Below are positions 2,376 through 17,039 of a stretch of DNA of 64,000 bases, in pieces (the stretch's first letter is position 1; the number at the start of each line of letters is the position of its first letter). The translations under genes were made by a program, and so were the position numbers. Under the pieces are notes generated by a model. That model had not been told where the DNA came from. It searched no databases and was given only the letters and a program-made list of their open reading frames with translations. This DNA comes from Zygnema circumcarinatum SAG 698-1b (lineage: Eukaryota; Plantae; Zygnematophyceae), in contig CM074814.1 in assembly GCA_037447605.1 (NCBI GenBank), positions 434,001-498,000 on the forward strand, written 5' to 3'.

Positions 2376-5300
2376 TCAGCAAGCATGCATCACAGACTGT
2401 AGATTGCAACTCAGTTTAGTACCCCAAACTCTCGCCCTCTCTCCCTCTCCTCCCCCTCTCCCCCTCTCCTCCCTCTCTCCCTCTCCTCCCTCTCCTCGCT
2501 CCCTCGCTCCCTCTCTCCCTCTCTCCCTCTCGCCTTCCTCGCTCCCTCCCTCGCTCCCTCTCTCCCTCCCTCTCTCCCTCTCTCCCTCTCTCCCTCTCTC
2601 CCTCTCTCCGTCTCACCCCCCCTCCCTCTCTCCCTCACTCTTCTTTATCATCTCAAAATCCTCTTCGCACAATGGAGGGAGGGGGGCGGGAGAGGGAGGG
2701 AGAGGGAAGGAAGGAGGGAGAAGGGGAAATGATGAAATAACTCACAGATGCCTCCGGACTTTGCAATAATTCCTTTCTCGGCTTCCACATGATGATGGTC
2801 TCATCGCTACTTCCGGACCATACTCCACTCCCATTCGGAGCCAACGCGAGAGTGCGAACCCAATGACTGTGTCCCTTCAAAACTGCCACACACTTTCCTT
2901 CCTCCCAAGGACCCTTCCAAGCCCTAATGGTCTGGTCATGACCTGCAGACCAAAGGACCCCATCTTCATCCAAAGCAAGAGCTCTAATGCAGTTGGTATG
3001 CCCCTCCATTACAGAAATAAGTTTCCCTTCAAGAGTCCAACACATCACCTTCTCTTCTCCTCCACCCGACCACACATAGTCCTTTGCAATTAGGGCCCTA
3101 GATGACCCCGGATGACCCACTATTGTCCTTATACAAGACCTGTTTTTCCAACATTTTATGTCTCCATCTGCAGCAGCCGACCAAATTTGGCCCTTGATGT
3201 CTTCACAAAGAGCATGAATTGGGGCTTTATGACCCGCTTTTCCTGTTGGAGAAATCCAAGTGTTTGTTATTGAATACCCATCTGAGACCCACTCTTTGAT
3301 CACATTGTCATCTCCTCCCGAAAAGCAGCATCCTTCAGAAACCACTAGTAGAGTTGTTATAGCATGTCTGTGAGCGTTCGCATGTATGACTAAAGTTTCA
3401 TTGGAATGGTGATCGATCAACATCATTTTGCCATCTATGCAGGCCACCCAAAGCCATCCCTTTTTATCGAAAGCGAGAGATTTTATGGTTTCATGCTCCT
3501 CTCCCAATGTGAATATACACTCTTCTCCTCTCCATCGAGAGAGATTTCGGCCCCCTGTCCAGACAGTTCCGTCAGAGCCCACCGCTAAACTGAACACAGG
3601 GAAATGGCAACTGATTTCCATGGCTGCCTCCATGGAAAGAAGATGCTCCTCCGGATCAACCTGTGCAGAATTTTTACAAACTTTTAGATTATAGAAACAA
3701 ATTTCAACGTCCAAAGGAAGCGATTAGAGAGCACGGACACGAAATTTCGTGATTTAAACTAATCTGCAAAACATGCATTATAATTATGCAAACATAGCAA
3801 GGAAGAAAAACAGAAATTGCAGCATAAATAGTACGAAAAAGAGTTAAAGCTTACCTTTTCCTGCTTGAAAAGACCTGCCTTTGCCTCTTCTTTCAGTCTG
3901 AGCTCCATTCTCAGTTTCTCCATCTCGTCATGGAGAGTCTCTATCAACTGCTCCTGCTTGTCCATTGCATTTTTTTGGGCCAAATAAAGCGTAGCAAAGA
4001 ACCCAACTTGCGTCGGAATTCGCGTGTTCCGAATTGCATGCTCCGTCTTCTCTTTTGAGAGCTTCAAAGGGTCCAAATTCTCACATAGAAGGAGCCGGTC
4101 CTTCTCATCCACTCCCTTATCTCTTTCCAAAAAGGCATCAATCGCATCATACATTCTATTGCAGGTTGCTCGAGCTGAACTTGGAAAAGCTTCAACTAAT
4201 CTCTGAAAATCATGAATTTGAATAGTTTCCGATTCAGTACTTGCCCAAAGGAGATAGCTGTCCACCAAATCTCCTACAGAGAGATTCTCTTCTGAAGGAA
4301 ATTTGCTCTTTTCCTGCTTCAAGAAAGTTGAATATTGTCTTATGATAGAGAGTACAGTCTCCGCTTCCAACACCTTCAAGTCATCTAAAGACATCCTATG
4401 CAAGTCTTTTGTTAAACATGTCTCCAGTTCAGCTTCATAGGAGTCGAGTTTTAGGACATGGCAGAGCTTCAATAGAGTCACTTTGTAAGCAAGAGTAGGA
4501 ATCTGTCCCATTAATCCTTTGAATTTGTCTCCAGAAAGATCCGCCGCGCTTACTAGGTATTCCACAATTGCTTGAATATTGCATCTTCTGAAATCTTCAA
4601 TGAGGGAACTTTCCTTTCCTTTGAGTTCATTGGGCTCTATTTGAAGGAGCCACATATGGTTTTTCGCAGCAAGGGCATTCCCTGCAACTACAAAAGCCAA
4701 TTTTCTGGTTTGAAATTCGTGCAGAACGCCTTGTAAGAGACCCAAAGGCAAATCTATAAGCTTGTTGAATAAGAATACGGATTCTTCGACTTTTGAGGAA
4801 TCTTCTTGAAGCTGTGAGGCATGGTCTGAAAACAAGCAAAACAGGACCAGAAATGTTAGAAGATTAGAAAATTCCCAAAGAAAGAGAGACAGAAGAGGGA
4901 GAGGGAGAGAGCAGGGGAGTGCGGTAGATGAGGAAAGAAGGCGAGTGGGGAATGGAGAGGGGGAGAGGAGAGGGAGAGTGGAAAGAGCGAAAGGGTGTGG
5001 TGGGAGAGGTAGACTGAAGCAAACAGATGCAATAAAGAGAGAGAGTGAGAGAGAGAGGGAGAGAGGGAGAGAGGGAGAAAGAGGGAGAGCTACCTGCCAC
5101 AACTTCCTGGCACTTTTCCAGTACTTTAGCACTCGAATCATTCTCAAGCAGCGCAATTTCGGATCCTTGGAGTAAAGAGAGAGCATTCTTCCAATCGGAA
5201 TAAAAAAATTCTCTGAAAACCTTTTTGCAATACTCAATGAGGTTATTCGAAGACTGGTCCTCCGTCATTAAGAGATGCTCTGCTGACAGCAGCACCTGTA

Positions 5301-5985
5301 CGGCATTTTTGGCAGTAAGCGAGATGGGGACGTCATAGCAGAACTCCGTGACGATTTGAAAGGCCTCGGAGCCACCGGGAATGGAAACTTCAAGGACTAA
5401 ATCACTCTTATTTGGGTTTTTTTCCTTTTCGAATAATATCTGGAAATATTCACTGCGAGCGAAGAGGGGGAGCTTGTGAAGTTGGAACTTGCGGCCGTCG
5501 ATGATGATTGTCACGTCCGAGAGCAGGCCCGAGGAAAGGAGACGGGGGAGAGAGGAGAGAGAAGAGGGAGGGGAGGGAGGGGAGGGAGGGGAGGGAGGGG
5601 AGGGANNNNNNNNNNGGAGGGATGGGGGTGAGGAGAGGGAGAGGGAGGGGAGGGAGTGGATGGAGGTGTATGAGGGCAGGGAAGGAAGGGAGGGGAGAGA
5701 GGGGAGGGAGGGGAGTAAGCTGTGAGAGGGCTAGACGGGAAGGGGGGGGAGAGTGGGAAGGGAGTGGAGGGAGGGGAGGCAGGAGAGAGAGGGGAGAGGG
5801 GGTAGGGAGGGGATAGAGGGGAGAGAGGAGATGGGGGGTAGGGAAGGAAAGGAGGGAAGAAAGAGGCGTCCATTTAGGGTTTATTAGTGTCTTTGGATCT
5901 TTTCGAAGAAGAAGGAGATGTTTAAGAAAGCATGAACGGTCGGGTATGAATGCATTAAGAAAGGATTCTACCTGTATTCTTAAGC
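2376..5985 (-). CDS. NRL-family BTB/POZ-NPH3 protein with a C-terminal WD40 beta-propeller; start codon and last exon unresolved
   Basis: Probable micro-exon 5985-5972 (LKNTG). BTB exon 5528-5094 (LLSDVTIIIDGRKFQLHKLPLFARS..PGGSEAFQIVTEFCY); its acceptor reads CGG rather than CAG next to an N gap. NPH3 exon 4825-3855 (..CNRMYDAIDAFL..CENLDPLKLSKEKTEHAIRNTRIP, then a coiled coil). WD40 exon 3660-2746 (repeated GH..WSA..D motifs). Short last exon 2396-2376 if the canonical acceptor is used. Intron phases agree. Confidence 0.8.
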
Positions 5986-7147: not shown

Positions 7148-8118
7148 CTAATTTGAATTGTTTGCTCAAAAATACATTTAGTTGTTATTGTTCTTCGTAA
7201 AAACCATTAAAGCAATTTTTTTGCTTCTCAACTTAAATCGAGAACGGTATTCGGCACATTCCTTATCCAAGTCATTTCGACGGCGGACGGGTATTGCTTT
7301 CGAACGTAATTTCTCCTGATAGTGTCGAAAAGTGCGATGCGCCAAAAGGCGGAGCCCTGCACTGCTCGACTGTGCGCTGTGGGCTGTGCGCTCAATAGGT
7401 CCGGCCCAGGTCGAGGCCCTCTCACTCCTGCTCACTCTGACCCTGAGGTTGCTGCAGGGGTCGGCTTGCTCTGCAGGCAGGCAGGCAGGCAGGCAGGTAG
7501 GCGCGCCGGAATATGATGCAGGGTAAGAAGAAGAGGAAGAGGAGGATGCAGGATGTGCGTGGGATTGCACAGTGCATTTCCTGCATGACCTGTATTTCCT
7601 GCGCTTGTCCTTCTCATATTGATCACTTCACTCTCGCACCGCTCTGTTTGCATGACTTTGCCAAACTGTCTTGAATCGTATGCATCTCAACTCTCGCAAT
7701 TCAATTCGACTTGAGGACAGGACAGGCAGAGGAGTGCTACGCTTGCTTGCTTGCTGCTTTGCAGTCAGTCCGAATAACCCATTCGCATGCCTATCGCTTG
7801 GTCATAATGTGTGGTTTGAACGCATGATTGGGAGACTTTGTAGCTGCTCACTTTCGGCTTCCACATTGATATTCATATTTTCTAAGATGAATGAACTGCA
7901 ATGTGGTCTTGAGGAGAAGCACTTAGCTTTTTTATCTTGCAGCGTCAGGGAATTTCCTGCAATGGAATTTCTTTGCACTTTACTTAGGCTAAGTTTTATG
8001 GTTTTCAGGACGTTCTGACATTTACGGCAGGGCCTTTTCTTTCCATAACAGTTGAGGAAATGACTTTCTTTGATTTTTTTTCTTGTGTTGTTGAAATTGC
8101 TCTGCAGTTTCGGACAAC

Positions 8119-10228
8119 ATGGCGACAAAGGACCATCAAAGGACTCAACCATCGCCTGACAACGACTTTGTGGAGACAGTTCTCAAAGAATTTGAAGACA
8201 TTTTGAGATCTTTGGATCTCAAAGGGTGCAATCCTGATGCGACGGGCGTGAGTGACGAATGCGACAATGATCACAAAAAGTTAGCAGGCATGTTTTCCTG
8301 ATTCTTTTTCAACAAAATTTGTGTCAATGATCTTCTTCATATACTACATTTGTACCATTATCTTTTCTTTTCCATTCTTTTTATGTCATGATTCACAGTT
8401 TAAAAGGGCCATTTTAATTTGCTATGGTTGTAGACTGCTTGAGGCGTTTCGGCAGACTTTCCCAATTTCAGAAAGGACTGCACACACTATAACTGACAAT
8501 TCCAAGCCCATGCACAACCCTAAAATCTGACAATGCTCTGTCATGTTTGTTTCGAATGTGTGCTGCGAATGCAGATCTTTTGGAGCAGGAGCGGCTTCAA
8601 GATTCCGAATACATCCGAAGCACCTTAGTCCCACTCTTTGAGAGATTGGCTGAGCTCCGGATTGGGTCTCTCCGCGGCATTCTCACATGTGCCAAAGCTA
8701 AGCACCTCACATTTGTGAAAGCAGGGAATGCTTTGGCAGCTGATAACTACCAATGGCTGCTTAGTGATATCCTGAAGAATGTCAAGCGATTTCTATCATC
8801 AGAAATTGATCATGAGAAAAAGAGAGCGGAACGGTTACGAGATAACCTTGTGGCTATTCTCAGTTTCTTGGTGAAATCTCTAAATGTGGAAATTTCAGCG
8901 CCTTCTTTTGGTTCACCAACGCCAGCATATCTTGTAACGCTACTCAAAGCGTCCCTTGATCTCGACGCTGAAATTCAAAAAGAAATTTTAATGAATATTT
9001 TGAGCAAGCAGCTGTACAAGGTTAAGCTGCAGGACCTGCAGACGTTGGAGGGGTCGACCGTGCAGAATTTGTTCAGTCGATGCTCGGTTTCTTTGGCTAA
9101 TATAGAAACAGAGATTCCGGCTGATGTCAGAGCTAACGTCAGCACTGTGATTGAACTTTTGGATGGCTACCTTTATTCCATGGTCCTTCGAAATCCAAGT
9201 TTTCATTTGACGGCCCTTCTCAATCTGCTGGAAGCCTTTCCTGCCAAGGAGAGGCTGAATTGCGACAAGATCTATGAAGCGATCGACATTTTCTTGTGGA
9301 AAAACCCTGGAGTTACAGATGAAGTCCGTATCCACCTGTCGGCATATCTGGATCCATTCAAGCTATCAGTCTCAAAAACAGAAGATGCTGTGCAAAACCC
9401 AAGAATGATATTGCAGCCGAATTTCTTTACCACGCTTTATTTGGCACAGAAAAGGCGCATCAAGCAGCTTGAGTCACTTCATGATGTGGTGAGTGCAAGC
9501 AGACTCTGTTCAACAAATGGTATTGCTTGAAGTCGACATCTGAGAATTGAGGTACAAGAGGGACGATGTTGAGGGCACATCTTGTGGGCCTGGTTGAAAA
9601 AGGTGCTCGCGATTGTAATGGACAAGAATGAAATGAATCAATTGTATTGATTTCTCTCTACAAAATTGCATGTTCTTCCTCCCCTTCTGCTTCTACTTTT
9701 GAACGTGAGCACCCTCACTGTTCCCTCATCCATTATCAGACACTAACAGAATGAAAGCCCGTGGGTGTTGAGCAGGCAATTCTGTTATCGGGCCTTTCGA
9801 TTCTCCTCGTTGCCATCATGTTCCTGTTCCTTTTCTTCTGGATGCGCAATCCTGTTATCTCCAATGTGGCTCCAATGCCTTGTCCCACTCTTGAAGGCAT
9901 CGTCGCCGAAGTCAAACGTTCACTGCCTTCTCCTCCGATTTGCCCCACTGCCGATGACCTTCTGCATGAACTGGATGTTTCCTACATTCGTTCCTATTGT
10001 CCTTCCGTTGAAGAGGTGGTTGCTGAAGTGAAGCGCTCCCTTCCGCCTCCTCCCTCCCTTCAAGAGCTACTCATTGAGTTGGCGGGCACTTCATGGAACC
10101 AAGCTCAGCGCGACGTTGGGCCTCACGTGAAACGGTTCGCGAGAGATGCTGGTAAAACCTTTCGAGCTCTGCAAGCCAATGCGGCATCACTTTTGCGCAA
10201 ATGGGAATTGGAGGATGAGAAGAAGTGA
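8119..10228 (+). CDS. BTB-less NPH3-domain protein, copy 1, with a predicted transmembrane terminal exon (an unspliced isoform would stop at 9530)
   Basis: Exons 8119-8287 (GC donor, GCAG|GCATGT), 8575-9488 (NPH3 domain: PAYLVTLLKAS..LSKQLYKVKLQDL..CDKIYEAIDIFL..LDPFKLS) and 9758-10228 (TM helix AILLSGLSILLVAIMFLFLFFW). The donor GTG|GTGAGT at 9489 and the acceptor AAAG| at 9757 are both phase 0, giving about 517 aa. Confidence 0.7.
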
Positions 10229-12256
10229 GAGGGGGAAGAGAAGCGAGTAACGGTAGATACAGAAACCGTGACCCTTACTTTCCTCGGAGAGACCACTATG
10301 CTCCCTCCTATTGACTGCAGTTGACCACTTGTAAATTCGTTTGTAGCCTTGTACTTAGTGTAGCTGCATATCAAAATCTTTTCGGATGGTGTACAGGGGT
10401 TCTTTGTGAGGGAAGGCCTCAACCTTCCTTCGGACCAGTTTGTATAAAAGGCTAGAGGCCGTTTTTCAGAAGGGCAGAAGTGCGCTGTAGGAGGGACTAG
10501 TGAGTAGGGTCGCTTTCTGTAATGGAAACTAGAACTGAGACTGGTCGATGCTGCCGTGCTGGTACTGTCGGTAGGCGTGAACTGTGCAGTGAACAAATTT
10601 GGGAAGTAGTGACCAAATTTCGTCCATCTGTGTAGGCTGAGCAACCGGTCCTCTCCTCCGTTGGAGTTCCACTTGTCAATATCCTTCGAACTCTTTGAGA
10701 TTGATCTGTACATAATCAACAATACTTTTCGGCTTGCTTTTCATTTCAGTTTTTTGTTTTAAACCTTTCTGAGAGCATTTGCCTTCAGTCTGTGGAGGCC
10801 GTTTGATTTGTTGCAAAAGCCCCCAAGGATGAAGAACCCCTAGGATGCCTGCCTGCCTATCTGTCACGTCACGCATGACCTTCCTCACGCTGCCGTACAC
10901 CCCCGTCTCCAAATGCTTCAACTGTCAGCATGTGTGAAATTACATCAGCAAAGTTGAAACCACGCCAGCAAAGTTTGGATGAAATTGGAGGAAGTTGAAC
11001 CATGAAAGCGCACCCTTCGCAGGAAGGCGTCCATATTCTTCTTCGATGCGCGGTCGGCGGCGAACGCATCTTGGGTCGTAATGTTGTGCGCGACGCGAGT
11101 ACTGCGACTGCACAAGAGGCCGAACCACATTGTGACCCCTCGACCGACTCATGACTTTGGCCATGCACATTTGGTGGCATCATCGCCATGAGATCAATGC
11201 CATTTCAACTTCTTTCCACATCCTAATTGTAGATTATAGACTTCTAATCTGTGACTCCGCCGATTTCCGAGGCATGCAGTCCCTCGAGCTAGTCTTCCTC
11301 TCCACCGTCCGATCGGTCAGATCGCATGAGCATAGAACCGTCGCATCCGTGGATCGAGTTCGTGACATGACGTAACGTGACGTGACGTACGAAGGGACGC
11401 CCACCAAACAGGGGAAACGGCGGTCCGTATGATCCGTTACATGTCACAACCCATTCCGTACATTTTACAACCCATTTCGTACATTTCACATCCATTTCGT
11501 AACATGACACAGCATATTTCGTACATATAGTACATACAGTACTGTATGGTACAAATCGTGTACGGCACATCGAAATTTTGCAAGGAGTACCGTATCGGGG
11601 CGATGGATGGGGCATGGTCTCACAATGGCGATGATGCCATCAAATGTACATGGCCAACATCATCATCATCATCATGGGAAACCACGACGACGGCACAGAC
11701 CGCGGCATGAGGCCCTGCGAGAATGTTTCCATGCAGCTTTTTCCTTACAGAAGCTTTTTCCTTCCGCGGCAGAAGCGCCACCACGTTCCAAAGCCGCCGC
11801 GTCCTGCCCTGCATGCCACAACACACCGCAGGACGGCGCACACCGCGGCATGAGCCCCTGCACCTCTCTCGGGGGGCCGACGGCGCAGAAAGCGCCGTGC
11901 AGCCGTCCGATCGCCGCAGGCGCAATCGCAGCCGTCCAGTCCACTACAGGGTCGACTTCGCCACCCAATCGCCGGGTCGGAGACGTCGCCGGGCGAGCCT
12001 TGGCACAAAGAGGCGGCGAATGCTACAACGCTTCGAGCCCGCTCTCGAGAGGGCTGCTTGAACTCTGGCGCTTCGCAGCGAGACGCTTATCGAAAGAAGT
12101 ACATCGTAGGTTTGATTTTGTCGCAAATTCAAAGACCCAAATGTACTTGTTTTGAATAACAAGGATTGGGAAGCACCGGAGGGAGCGGCTTCTGCAACTT
12201 ATTTTCTCGCTCTGATGGAACCGCTCTGCTCTGCTCTGCAGGTTGCGGCTGGAGCC

Positions 12257-13632
12257 ATGGCGGCCAGGGGCCTGCAGGAGACTCAGCAAGCGTCGGACGA
12301 CGAATTTACGAAAGCAATCATCAAGGAATTCGTAGAAGTCACCAGACAAAAGCGTTGGGAAAGGGCAGCAGGCATGTTCATTTTTTCTTTTTTTCCAAAA
12401 AAAATTGTATGTATGATCCCCTTCTTAGCTTCAATTATTATTCTTTTATTTTTGTACCATTATATTTCCATTTTTATTCTTTGTGTGTCATGATTCGCAG
12501 ATTTACAGGACCTCTTCAATTTGCTATGGTTGTAACATGCTTAAAGCTTTTCGGCAAACTTTTGCTTTACGTTAACTTTGTCCTTCGCTAACCAATTCTG
12601 ACTAAGATTTAGGAATGATTCTCTCCGGAAGTTCACCATTGTACACTCATGGTATAGAGACTGGTGCCGTTCCTCCTGCCGCGAAAACAGGCTTTCACTG
12701 TCACCTCTAAGCCCTGTGCGCAAGCTAACAAAGCTCGGTCATGCTTGCATTGGATGTCTTTTGCGAATGCAGATATTTTGGCGCAGGAGCGCCTTCAGGA
12801 TTCCGAACACATCCGAAGCACCTTAGTGCCTCTCTTTAAAGAGAGATTGCTTTGTCTCGACGTTGAGGTCGTCTGCGACATTCTCAAATGTGCCAAAGCT
12901 AGGCACCTCACATTTGTGAAAGCAGGGAATACTTTGGCAGCTGATAACTACCAATGGCTGCTTTCACGGGAAATTTTACTAAATGGTCCAAGGACAACCA
13001 TGATCCTCACATTCTTGGTCGAATCTCTAAATCTTGAAATTTCGGCGTCTTATGTCAGTTCAGACTGTGTTCCAACGCCAGCATATCTTGTAACGCTACT
13101 CAAAGCGTCCCTTGATCACGATGCTGAAATTCCAAAAAAAAATTTAATGAATATTTTGAGCAAGCAGTTGTACAAGGTCAAGCTGCAGGACCTGCAGACG
13201 TTGAATAGTTTGACCGTGCAGAATTTGTTCAGTCGATTCTCGGTGGCTTTAGGCGAGCAAGAGTCAGAGACTTCGGCTGACGTAATCAGCACTGTGATTG
13301 AACTGCTGGACGACTACCTAAATTGGATGGTTTATCGAAACGAAAGCTGTAACGTACTGGACTTTCTCAAACTGCTGGAAGTCGTTCCTGCGAAGGAGAG
13401 GCTGAATTGCAACAAAATCTATGATGCAATCGACATTCTCTTGTGGAAAAACCCTGGAGTTAAAAATGATGACCGTGTTCGCTTGTCGGCATATCTGGAT
13501 CCGCTGAAGCTATCATTCGTTAAAGCGAAAGATGCCGTGCAAAACCAAAGAATGGTATTGCAGCCGGGTTTCGTTTCCTCGTTTCGTCTGATAATAAAGC
13601 GCATTAAGCATCTCGAGTCACTACGTAATTTG
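12257..13632 (+). CDS. BTB-less NPH3-domain protein, copy 2; 3' end unresolved
   Basis: Exon 12257-12371 (GC donor) and exon 12773-13632 are a clear paralogue of copy 1, ending at donor TTG|GTGAGC. The ORF also reads through in frame into copy 2b. Confidence 0.65.
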
Positions 13633-13794
13633 GTGAGCGCAAGCAGACTCCGTTCGAGGTTTTTATCGATAGCAGTATTTTGCTATTTCAGTTTTATAGG
13701 ACATTCGAAGGCACAAGTGAACTGTTTCCGAATGACATGGCATTTTATAACAGTTGGACTGTCTCCTTTTGCAACGCAGGCTTTGTCTGGCGTC

Positions 13795-14364
13795 ATGGCG
13801 GCCACAGACCACCAAGGGACTCAGCCAGCGTCTGGCAACGACTCTGTGGAGGCCCGTTTCAAGGAATTTCAACGAATAACAGATGATTTTTCCAGAGATT
13901 CATCATGTTTTTTTGACGGAGTTCTTTCTCCTTATGAAAGACTTTCTGGCGCCGACTTAATTAAAATGGCAACAGGCATGTTTTCTTTCCTTTTTTCGAA
14001 CAAATTCTGTGTCTATGATCACCTTCTTATGCGGCAATTGTCTTTATTTTTTCTTTTGCATTCTTTGTATGTCATGATTCACAGATTAGACGGTCCACTT
14101 TGATTTGCTGTGGTTATAAAATGCTTGAGGAATTTCGACAGTCTTTTTCACTTTTACGTTGCCTAGCTTGTCCTTGGTTGACCAAGTTTGACTAAACCAC
14201 TACTTTACCCTTCCCTTGTCCTTTTTCAACTCCTACCTATCTTAGGAACGGAAGATGTGCCAAATCCAGGAATGGTATTGCAGCCTGGTTTCCGTTCCGT
14301 GCTTGAGTCACTTCGTAATGTGGTGAGTGCAAGCAGACTTTGTTCAACGGGTGGTACTGCTTGA
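13795..14364 (+). pseudogene. Copy 2b: N-terminal exon plus only the last ~39 codons of the NPH3 exon (internal deletion)
   Basis: Exon 13795-13975 (MAATDHQGTQPASGNDSVEARFKEF.., GC donor) is homologous to the copy 1 first exon. The remnant 14246-14364 (TEDVPNPGMVLQPGF..LESLRNVVSASRLCSTGGTA*) follows an in-phase CTTAG acceptor. Confidence 0.55.
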
Positions 14365-14620
14365 AACCGGCATTTGAGGATGACGGTGCTGAGGGAACAT
14401 CTCCTGAGGCTGGGTCGAAAAGCATGCGAGAAATTGTAATGGAGAAAAATGAAACGAATCAAGTGTATTGATCTCTCTCTGTTGCAATGTCTCCTTGTCC
14501 TGTCATTTCGGATATCTAGAATTCATATGATATTCACATTCATTTGGTAAACAGGTGAGCGGCTGCCTTGCCTTCTCGCTTTGGAGGAACCACTCTGCTC
14601 TGCAAGCTGCGACTGGTTCT

Positions 14621-17039
14621 ATGGAGGCAGTTTTGAAGGAATTTGAAGATATAACAAAGCCTTTGGTTTGCAATCCAAATCAGATTTTAACAGAAAACGA
14701 TTGTCACACCGAAAAGTACGAAAAGGCAGCAGGCATGTATTTTTTTTTCTGTTTTCTCAACGAAATTGTGTTTGATCTCCTTCTCATGCTACAATTTTAG
14801 CATTATCTTTTCTTTACCATTCTTTGTATGTCAGGATTCTTAGATGAGCGGGACGTCTCTAATTTCTTATGGTTGTAAAATGCTTGCGGCGTTTTGGCAG
14901 AACTTTTCACCTTTACTCTACCTTCAGCTTGTCCTTGGTGAACCGATTCTGACTAACCTACTACTTTGCCCATCCCCTTTTCCTTCTTCAACTAAGTTCG
15001 AATAATATTCAGCAATGACTCTCTCCCTGAAGTTCACTATTGCACACTCATGATATGGAGACTGTTGCTATTACTGGTGCCACAAAAAACGCTTTCAGTG
15101 ACAGATGTAAGCGCAACCCTATAAGCTAACAATGCTTTGTCATGTTTGTTTTTGAATGTCTGCTGCGAATGCAGATATTTTAGCGCAGGAGCTGCTTCAA
15201 AATTCCGAATATATCCGAAGCACATTATTGCCTCTCTTTGAGAGACTGATTTCTCTCGAAGTTGAGGCTGTCTGCGGCATTCTCGAATGTGTCAAAGCTA
15301 GGCACGTCACATTTGTGAAAGCAGGTAATGCCTTGGCAGCCGATAACTACCAATGGCTGCTTTCAGATATCCTAAAGGATGGCTACCGAACAAGGAAAGC
15401 CATGATCCTCACATTCTTGGTGGAATCGCTAAATCTGGAAAGTTCAGCGTCTTCTTTTCGTTCAGAATGTGTTCCAACGTCAGCATATCTTGTAACGCTA
15501 CTCAAAGCGTCCCTTGATCTCGACGCAAAATTCCAAAAGAAATTTTAATGAATATTTTGAGCAAGCAGCTGTACAAGGTCAAGTTGCAGGACCTGCAGAC
15601 GTTGAATAGTTTGACCGTGCAGAATTTGTTTAGTCGATGCTCGGTCGCTTTAGGCAAGCAAGAGCCAGTGACTTTGGCTGACGTCATCAGCACTGTGATT
15701 GAACTGTTGGACGACTACCTAAATTGGATAGTTCATCGAAACGAAAGTTGTAACGTAAGGGTCTTTCTCAAACTGCTCGAAGCCGTTCCTGCGAAGGAGA
15801 GGCTGAATTGCGACAAAATTTATGAAGCAATCGACATTCTCCTGTTGAAACAGCCTGGAGTTCGAAGTGATTTCCGTATCCGCTTGTGTGCATATCTGGA
15901 TCCATTCAAGCTATCAGTCTCAAAAGCGGAAGATGCCGTGCAAAACCGAAGAATGGTATTGCAGCTGAGTTTCTTTTCCTCGCTATATTTGACAAAAAGG
16001 CAAGCAGAGCAGCCCAAGCAAGCAAACAAGCAAGCAGCAAGCAGGCAGCTCGAGTCACTTCATAATATGGTGAGTGCAAGCAGACTTTGTTCAACAGATG
16101 GGATTGCTTGAAGTCGACATTTGAGGATGATACATGAGGGACGATGTTGAGGAGACATCTCCTGGGGTTGGGTCGAAAAGCATGCGCGCGAATGCAATGG
16201 AGAATAATGAAATGAATGAATTGTACTGATCTCTCTATTTATTTGAAAATGCGAAATGATTCGTGGTGTGTGTTTTCTAGTTACTGCTTGCTAAGTCCTG
16301 AGTGATGACGAATAAGCAAGGCGTGAGATTTTCCGTTATCTGTCATTTTATGAGCTGTCGACGTATGTTGCTTTAGTACAGATGGCAGTAAAATGGAACC
16401 CCTACTCTCGAGAGTAGGATTGCTTCTATAAATACCATGATAGTATTAATCTTGTAGCAGATATGTGGTGTCAGGCACCTCTCACTCGTTGCCCTCCTCG
16501 CCTTCCCGCTCTCTCTCCTCCTCTCTCTCACCCTGCCTCTCTCCACAACGCGACTTCCTTTCTCTTATATTGTCTCGTCCCTCCATCAATTTCCTGCCCT
16601 CCCTCCCCTTCTGCTTCTACTTCTAATTTTGAGATCTCTGTCTTCTATCCATAATTAGAAACTAACAGAATGAAAGACCGTGGGTGTTGAGCAGGCAATT
16701 TGGCTATCGGGTCTTTTTCTTCTCCTCGTTTCCATCCTGTTCCTGTGCCGTTCTCTTTGGATGTGTGAAAATGCCGGAGCCCCCCTGCATGAACTGTATG
16801 ATTCCTTCACCCGTTCCCACTATCCCTCCGCTGAAGAAATAGTCGCTGAAGTGAAGAGCTCCCTTCCCCCTCTTCCCTCTCTTCAAGTCCAACTCGCTGA
16901 GATGACGGGCATTACTTGGGACGAAGTTCGGCCCCACGTGAAACGGTTCGCGCTTGATGCTGTCAAAACCTTTCGAGCTCTGCAAGCCGAAGCGGCCGCT
17001 GTATGGGGTAACTTGCAAGAGGAGAATGAAAAGAAGTGA
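14621..17039 (+). pseudogene. BTB-less NPH3-TM copy 3 with a 1-nt frameshift (pseudogene or assembly error)
   Basis: Exons 14621-14732 (GC donor), 15175-16069 and 16677-17039 mirror copy 1. GACGCAAAATTCC at ~15527 is one base short of the paralogues' GAYGCTGAAATTC, giving TAA at 15546-15548, and homology resumes in the next frame (ORF 15548..16111). Confidence 0.6.

Follow-up and report, generated by a model that had tools for sequence, protein, structure and literature searches.

A 64,000-nucleotide stretch of the genome of Zygnema circumcarinatum SAG 698-1b (contig CM074814.1, positions 434,001 to 498,000 of the forward strand; hereafter the window, from whose first letter all coordinates are counted) carries at 8119-17039, on the plus strand, a gene unit in four diverged copies arranged in tandem, as found by tblastn and self-blastn. 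The first of these, copy 1, is an expressed and correctly spliced gene with a leader and three main coding exons. It encodes a 518-residue protein that has an NPH3 domain, no BTB domain, one hydrophobic segment and a tail that is shared, in the same order, with a protein from a second organism. We read this product, with a probability of roughly three in four, as an NPH3 platform that is anchored in a membrane by a transmembrane (TM) helix and extended by the conserved tail.

The structure of copy 1 was established with public sequencing data. Seven public runs under the source organism label cover 84-90% of the sampled words of 8100-10300, and contigs from four of the seven, which come from three studies, were mapped on 8000-13900. 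The resulting gene model is as follows.

7363-7522, plus strand: copy 1 leader (5' exon) from RNA contigs, start approximate
8108-8287, plus strand: copy 1 exon 1, with ATG at 8119, the acidic N-terminal region and a phase 1 end at a GC donor
8288-8574, plus strand: copy 1 intron 1, GC-AG, 287 nt, phase 1, with an RNA joint
8575-9488, plus strand: copy 1 exon 2, the complete NPH3 domain (PF03000 match)
9489-9775, plus strand: copy 1 intron 2, GT-AG, 287 nt, phase 0, with an RNA joint
9776-9844, plus strand: copy 1 exon 3, part coding for the predicted TM helix (residues 369-391, by Kyte-Doolittle hydropathy)
9845-10228, plus strand: copy 1 exon 3, part coding for the 127-residue tail, stop at 10226-10228
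10229-10734, plus strand: copy 1 3' untranslated region, with contigs ending at 10733/10734 in runs X1 and X2

Both introns are removed in all four runs. Specifically, the first joint, which maps as 8283^8571 with four ambiguous letters, is equivalent to 8287/8575 with GC..AG ends, and the second, which maps as 9487^9775 with the cut moved by +1, is equivalent to 9488/9776 with GT..AG ends. Intron 2 has a branch-point-like CTAAC at 9743-9747, 28 nt ahead of the AG that is used. The spliced GC-AG and GT-AG joints occur at 15-60 times the depth of intron-retaining contigs; across 9488^9776 the contig depth in the four runs is 103-207 versus 3.5-7.2 for contigs that keep intron 2, and the word depth of spliced contigs overall is 65-236. 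In run X3 a single 2,082-nt contig, composed of 8107-8283, 8571-9487 and 9775-10623 with zero mismatches, contains all three main coding exons and crosses the intron 2 joint with 255 letters on the shorter side. Word depth is zero between 10758 and 11151, and genomic DNA contamination as the source of the contigs is ruled out by the spliced joints together with this zero depth between genes. The full coding model (7513-7522, 8108-8287, 8575-9488 and 9776-10228) is 1,557 nt long and open throughout.

The leader exon also settles where the protein begins. Contigs that reach 8107 extend up to 160 letters more, ending ...GGCAGGTAGGCGCGCCGGAATATGATGCAG, and this extension matches the window up to 7521/7522, where GTAAG follows. 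The leader contains an in-frame TAG at 7498-7500 and then ATGs at 7513, the first in frame, and at 7516, both of them in frame with the ATG at 8119. Because the in-frame TAG precedes the first ATG, no BTB-coding exon can be joined upstream, and a hidden upstream BTB exon is ruled out since all four runs give an identical leader exon with this TAG.

The initial annotation, made from the letters of the window alone, had proposed that the NPH3 exons of copies 1 and 4 are joined to the small hydrophobic open reading frames (ORFs) 9761-10228 and 16680-17039. The features to which it pointed are all present: both ORFs start with GTG, follow closely on an in-frame TGA (9752-9754 and 16671-16673) and contain no ATG ahead of the hydrophobic stretch; the motif CTAACAGAATGAAAG occurs at 9743-9757 and again at 16662-16676; and phase-0 donors are found at 9489 (GTG/GTGAGT) and 16070 (ATG/GTGAGT). 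For copy 1, RNA contigs of the four runs bear out the central claim that a BTB-less NPH3 exon is joined in frame to a terminal exon that codes for a hydrophobic helix and a tail. With respect to the exact junction, which had been placed at 9488^9758, the donor was predicted correctly and the acceptor was not. The cell uses the CAG at 9773-9775 and not the AG at 9756-9757, so that the exon starts at 9776, 18 nt further downstream. The six predicted codons PVGVEQ are absent as a result, the frame is kept and translation enters the hydrophobic ORF at its sixth codon.

A separate observation concerns the terminal exon, where the word depth over 9776-10734 is 1.6-2.2 times that of exons 1 and 2 in three of the four runs. 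This is probably 3' bias; a separate transcript that starts inside intron 2 may also lie behind it.

We next consider the protein that is encoded by this transcript. Residues 1-62 form an acidic region with no Pfam family match. Residues 63-368, which are encoded by the NPH3 exon, match PF03000 at 66.6 bits (E 3.6e-18; query 8574-9488) over profile positions 4-255 of 258, where membership was assigned at a gathering score of 27 bits with most of the profile covered. The large exons of copy 2 (exon 2, 56 bits) and copy 4 (back half of exon 2, 52.8 bits) match the same profile, and the earlier reading of these exons as NPH3 domains is upheld. The signature stretches of copy 1 around ...ERLNCDKIYEAIDIFLWKNPGV... 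and ...LDPFKLS...EDAVQNPRMILQP... appear to resemble conserved NRL regions. A sequence search of the PDB with the NPH3 exon was blank. The BTB domain recruits CUL3 and pairs NRL proteins with each other. The BTB profile (PF00651), which the initial annotation expected to find no match, gives none in any exon of the array at E up to 10, and the NPH3 exon of copy 1 has no more than 62 residues in front of it; as a control, the BTB domain of P0001, a protein described below, scores 25.1 bits.

Directly after the NPH3 domain comes the hydrophobic segment. Residues 369-391 (AILLSGLSILLVAIMFLFLFFWM) have a 19-residue Kyte-Doolittle maximum of 2.86, where the next best value in the protein is 1.49, and they are flanked by four lysines and arginines in the 15 residues on the N-terminal side versus one in the 15 residues on the C-terminal side. 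The tail, residues 392-518, consists of three units headed by CP[ST], namely CPTLEGIVAEVKRSLPSPPI, CPTADDLLHELDVSYIRSY and the conserved block CPSVEEVVAEVKRSLPPPPSLQELL, followed by a basic C-terminal helix, PHVKRFARDAGKTFRALQANAASLLRKW. No relative of the tail was found in Pfam, among PDB sequences or in the Atlas, where nothing scored above 0.64. Judged from the gene model and the alignment, no coiled coil is apparent after the NPH3 domain: the NPH3 exon runs directly into the hydrophobic helix, and copy 1 has nothing that aligns with the coiled-coil stretch of P0001. A C-terminal RxS/14-3-3 site is likewise absent from the ends of copy 1 (...RKWELEDEKK) and of P0002 (...LEERLTGD), the protein to which we now turn.

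The same design occurs in a second organism. The initial annotation had called for a search for other BTB-less proteins with an NPH3 domain and a TM segment. When the TM and tail region was used as the query of an exhaustive phmmer search, 1.84 billion representatives yielded one real match, P0002. The other match, P0003, is a low-complexity repeat protein and was rejected as compositional. P0002 is a 506-residue protein that is encoded by an uninterrupted ORF, with in-frame stops before its ATG, on 1.9-2.4-kb Logan transcript contigs of SRR8128903, SRR8128904 and SRR8128907. It matches PF03000 at 76 bits, has no BTB match at E up to 1, and has a hydropathy peak of 2.77 at residues 383-407, its one hydrophobic segment, at a place that matches the helix of copy 1. 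In its tail there are likewise three units, together with the block CPSIEEIVSEVKKSLPPPPNLQTLL. The spliced copy 1 model and P0002 are collinear end to end, with 39% identity over 443 residues (E 1e-85), and the order of a short N-terminus, NPH3 domain, TM segment and three-repeat tail with a CPS-EE-V-EVK-SLPPPP block is common to both. The two differ in that the tail of P0002 is shorter (99 residues), most of the basic C-terminal helix segment being absent that copy 1 has. Identity amounts to 18% in the N-terminus, 44% in the NPH3 domain, 24% in the helix and 40% in the tail. What persists in the helix is its hydrophobic character and not its sequence, and the tail matches the NPH3 domain in its degree of conservation.

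An AlphaFold model of P0002, built from six sequences (mean predicted local distance difference test score, pLDDT, 69.6), shows the NPH3 domain as entirely helical (pLDDT about 75-92) and has a single unbroken helix from 359 to 407 that passes through the hydrophobic segment. When this model was compared with the PDB by Foldseek, only generic HEAT/armadillo-like helical-repeat matches with a template modelling score of at most 0.24 were returned, which is uninformative, and no similarity to any solved GTPase fold was seen. An Atlas search with P0002 gave only NPH3 clusters, some of them without BTB. Word-indexed searches with the NPH3 exon, with whole P0002 and with its tail returned only P0001 or P0002, and these blanks say little because the index performs poorly at about 40% identity and restricts candidate length.

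From these features we propose the following working of the protein. In the absence of a signal peptide, and with the sole hydrophobic segment lying behind about 370 residues, the helix would be expected to serve as a signal anchor of type II. The NPH3 domain would then face the cytosol, and the tail the lumen or the outside. The membrane in question would be one of the secretory pathway or the cell surface. Such a fixed anchor would take the place of the reversible amphipathic helix and of the RxS/14-3-3 release switch of canonical NRL proteins, and a protein that lacks BTB would neither recruit CUL3 nor dimerise via that domain. The activity of the NPH3 domain would then be confined to one membrane, with GTP hydrolysis, RAB/VAMP72 binding and AGC-kinase scaffolding as the activities that have been reported for it. 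If the GTPase activity and the RAB and VAMP binding also hold here, such an NPH3 module would reside in the membrane and work in trafficking or polarity.

Several points weigh against this proposal. Membrane insertion, the membrane concerned and the topology are predicted from hydropathy and flanking charges. The charge bias around the helix is weak in P0002 (four lysines and arginines on the N-terminal side versus three on the C-terminal side), and the tail contains a proline run, LPPPP, of a kind more usually encountered on the cytosolic side of a membrane. No relatives of the tail were detected, and confidence in its model is low (pLDDT under 50). The type of the runs is only a tool's guess ('RNA?' or '?'), and we take them as RNA because the joints are spliced and the intergenic depth is zero. 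Among everything searched, the combination of NPH3 and TM segment was found in two organisms only. Finally, pairwise comparison of the array copies gives a dS of 0.24-0.38 and a ratio of nonsynonymous to synonymous substitution (dN/dS) of 0.5-0.63, a pattern that fits relaxed constraint across the array.

The last two points would also suit an explanation in which the transcript is real and its product is not an integral membrane protein, either because the helix is buried or serves in oligomerisation, or because this is a fast-evolving, lineage-specific gene of little function. The AlphaFold model gives just a long helix, and membrane context is something that it cannot represent. However, in both organisms a stretch of 23-25 residues with a mean hydropathy of 2.8-2.9 and no charged residue lies at the same position at only 24% identity, which is the typical pattern of a membrane anchor, and the tail and NPH3 domain are conserved at 40-44%. 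We therefore regard a product outside the membrane as most improbable and retain the membrane-anchored platform.

A second explanation involves the gene that lies next to copy 1:

3909-5487, minus strand: head-to-head neighbour with BTB at 5098-5487 and NPH3 at 3909-4772, found by tblastn with the copy 1 model and P0001

This neighbour resembles P0001, a protein from the same sample as P0002 that has BTB, NPH3 and a coiled coil; on the P0001 contig (L004), pieces of a WD40 ORF lie downstream in other frames. Like copy 1, the neighbour and P0001 have an NPH3 domain, which is 36-37% identical to that of copy 1. They differ from it in having BTB and in belonging to a separate clade, and P0001 furthermore has no TM helix (hydropathy maximum 1.63). 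Note that the head-to-head arrangement may give the two NPH3 orthogroups a shared divergent promoter region of about 1-2 kb. In the decoy, or dominant negative, explanation an anchored BTB-less NPH3 protein would bind the partners of BTB-containing NRL proteins, such as phototropin, AGC kinases or other NRL proteins, and shield them from CUL3-dependent turnover, rather than signal on its own account. This is close to the role suggested in the initial annotation, in which phototropins or AGC kinases would be tethered or sequestered without CUL3. The absence of BTB from copy 1 and P0002 and the adjoining BTB-NPH3 gene are in its favour, as is the argument that angiosperm BTB-less NRL proteins do not engage CUL3 either (PMC9491448). 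On the other hand, plant NRL proteins pair mainly via BTB or the C-terminal region (PMC12685104, PMC11313873), neither of which the copy 1 protein has, and a decoy would leave the conserved tail across the membrane without a role. We consider the decoy unlikely, and favour a membrane-anchored platform with an activity of its own.

In regards to the rest of the array, the remaining copies are as follows.

12257-13632, plus strand: copy 2, with exon 1 at 12257-12371, a GC-AG intron, exon 2 at 12773-13632 and the donor at 13633 kept
13795-14480, plus strand: copy 3, with exon 1 at 13795-13975 and intron 1, then just the final ~65 nt of exon 2, its donor at 14323 and the first part of intron 2
14621-17039, plus strand: copy 4, with exon 1 at 14621-14732, exon 2 at 15175-16069 and a putative TM exon at 16695-17039

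The GC donor of intron 1 (AG/GCATGT) is found in all four copies (8288, 12372, 13976 and 14733) and is confirmed by RNA for copies 1 and 2, and a 17-nt intron 2 donor sequence, GTGAG[TC]GCAAGCAGACT, is also kept in all four. Copy 2 is open in frame, lacks 19 NPH3 codons that copy 1 and P0002 both have, and has no TM exon of its own. Its transcription is weak, being seen in X3 only (one of four runs) with a depth of 12 at the joint 12371/12773, and no contig is found at its donor. Copy 3 has lost its NPH3 domain by deletion and also has no TM exon of its own. In copy 4 a 1-nt deletion between 15526 and 15527 leads to a premature TAA at 15546-15548 in exon 2, intron 2 has a 350-nt insertion, and the putative TM exon is short of 96+12 nt of tail sequence when compared with copy 1. 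As assembled, only copy 1 is intact, and we read the other three as decaying duplicates. The initial description of this region as an array of genes holds for local tandem amplification and fails for the integrity of the members, one being intact and three degraded.

The array could alternatively be read as having a shared terminal exon, in which case copies 2, 3 and 4 would be alternative NPH3 cassettes whose donors at 13633, 14323 and 16070 splice to the TM exon at 16695. The donor sequence common to all copies and the absence of a TM exon from copies 2 and 3 would suit such an arrangement, as would the open frame and weak transcription of copy 2. However, copy 3 has no NPH3 domain to contribute, copy 4 is frameshifted, the only transcribed candidate is the one seen at low depth in a single run with nothing at its donor, and the dN/dS values given above also count against it. 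We consider a shared exon very unlikely. A broader conjecture is that proteins with NPH3 and TM segments are a conserved algal receptor-like NRL class, in which the repeat tail on the lumenal or outer side would take a cue or partner and control an NPH3 domain that is fixed on the cytosolic side as a GTPase or trafficking scaffold; the cytosolic module might then be varied by tandem cassettes with conserved donors that splice to one common TM exon. To this we give only about the weight of a long shot, and the reading of copy 1 as a single intact gene for an anchored NPH3 platform is preferred.

Three sequence features of the array stand apart from these questions. A 479-codon ORF at 12664-14103 links copy 2 in frame with exon 1 of copy 3 across the unspliced spacer, probably by chance. 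Between copies 1 and 2, at 11150-11190 and 11615-11690, there is a short inverted repeat (…CATGGCCAA…GATGATGCCA…) together with a CAT/His-codon microsatellite. Many unrelated RNA contigs stack on 11615-11647, to a depth of up to 297, and this stretch is therefore a dispersed repeat.

The comparison with P0002 also bears on how the protein arose. In a maximum-likelihood tree of the NPH3 domain with five rows, from which the half domain of copy 4 was left out, P0001 and the neighbour are separated from P0002, copy 1 and copy 2 with support of 100/99. By this tree the type with NPH3 and TM segments is an orthogroup of its own that is older than the split of the two organisms. Since P0002 has the identical order of NPH3, TM and tail in another organism, the fusion predates the local array. 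The initial annotation had viewed the TM exon as captured by exon shuffling; this finds no support, as P0002 already has the complete order and the exhaustive phmmer search of the 1.84 billion representatives revealed no free-standing relative of the tail that could have been the donor. Because the lineage is different and the orthogroup is a separate one, loss of BTB in this type was most likely independent of the loss in angiosperms.

Elsewhere in the window, 39336-43610 is a 4.3-kb tract of pyrimidines only, made of degenerate CCCTCCC / CCCCCT units (about 600 copies), with a G+C (GC) content of 0.77-0.81 and a GC skew near -0.9 to -1.

The role of the NPH3 domain is debated, as it has been viewed as a CUL3 adaptor module, as an AGC-kinase scaffold and recently as a GTPase that binds RABs and VAMPs. 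To our knowledge all NRL proteins that have been studied cycle on and off the membrane and nearly all of them carry BTB. Copy 1 encodes a natural, expressed and conserved protein that keeps the NPH3 domain without BTB and is predicted to be fixed to a membrane. That such a protein is expressed and conserved indicates that the domain can serve a purpose in the absence of BTB, of CUL3 and of a light-driven release switch. It also indicates that BTB loss in the NRL family has occurred outside the angiosperms as well, and it provides a minimal form for asking what the NPH3 domain does at a membrane.

In regards to known systems, the angiosperm BTB-less proteins AtNRL4, AtNRL12 and LsNRL4 have been argued to be CUL3-independent and, among 78 land plants, were reported from angiosperms only (PMC9491448). 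Like copy 1 they have an NPH3 domain without BTB; unlike copy 1, LsNRL4 keeps the conserved C-terminal serine, and no TM segment is reported for these proteins (PMC9491448). The novelty supposed in the initial annotation is narrowed accordingly: lack of BTB alone is not new, whereas an integral-membrane BTB-less NPH3 form is apparently undescribed. At the level of titles and abstracts no description of an NPH3-domain protein with a TM segment was found in the literature, and in PMC12685104 the word 'transmembrane' occurs only within a cited title. For the NPH3 domain itself, BTB-independent GTP hydrolysis and binding to RABE1c, RABH1b and VAMP721/722 have been reported, in a study that gives no sequence motif for the GTPase activity (PMC11313873). 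Among canonical proteins, Arabidopsis NPH3 binds acidic lipids of the membrane reversibly by a C-terminal, polybasic amphipathic helix (PMC8531446) and is released when phot1 phosphorylates the serine of the RxS site, third from the end, and 14-3-3 binds (PMC8531357). The canonical family (NPH3, RPT2, NCH1 and NPY/MAB4, with the order BTB-NPH3-coiled coil) and copy 1 have in common a full-length PF03000 domain and action at a membrane surface, which for copy 1 is predicted. They differ in that BTB, the coiled coil and the C-terminal RxS/14-3-3 site are found in the canonical proteins and all three are lacking in copy 1. In place of the reversible amphipathic-helix lipid anchor of the canonical proteins, copy 1 has a predicted TM helix and an additional conserved tail that would lie beyond the membrane.

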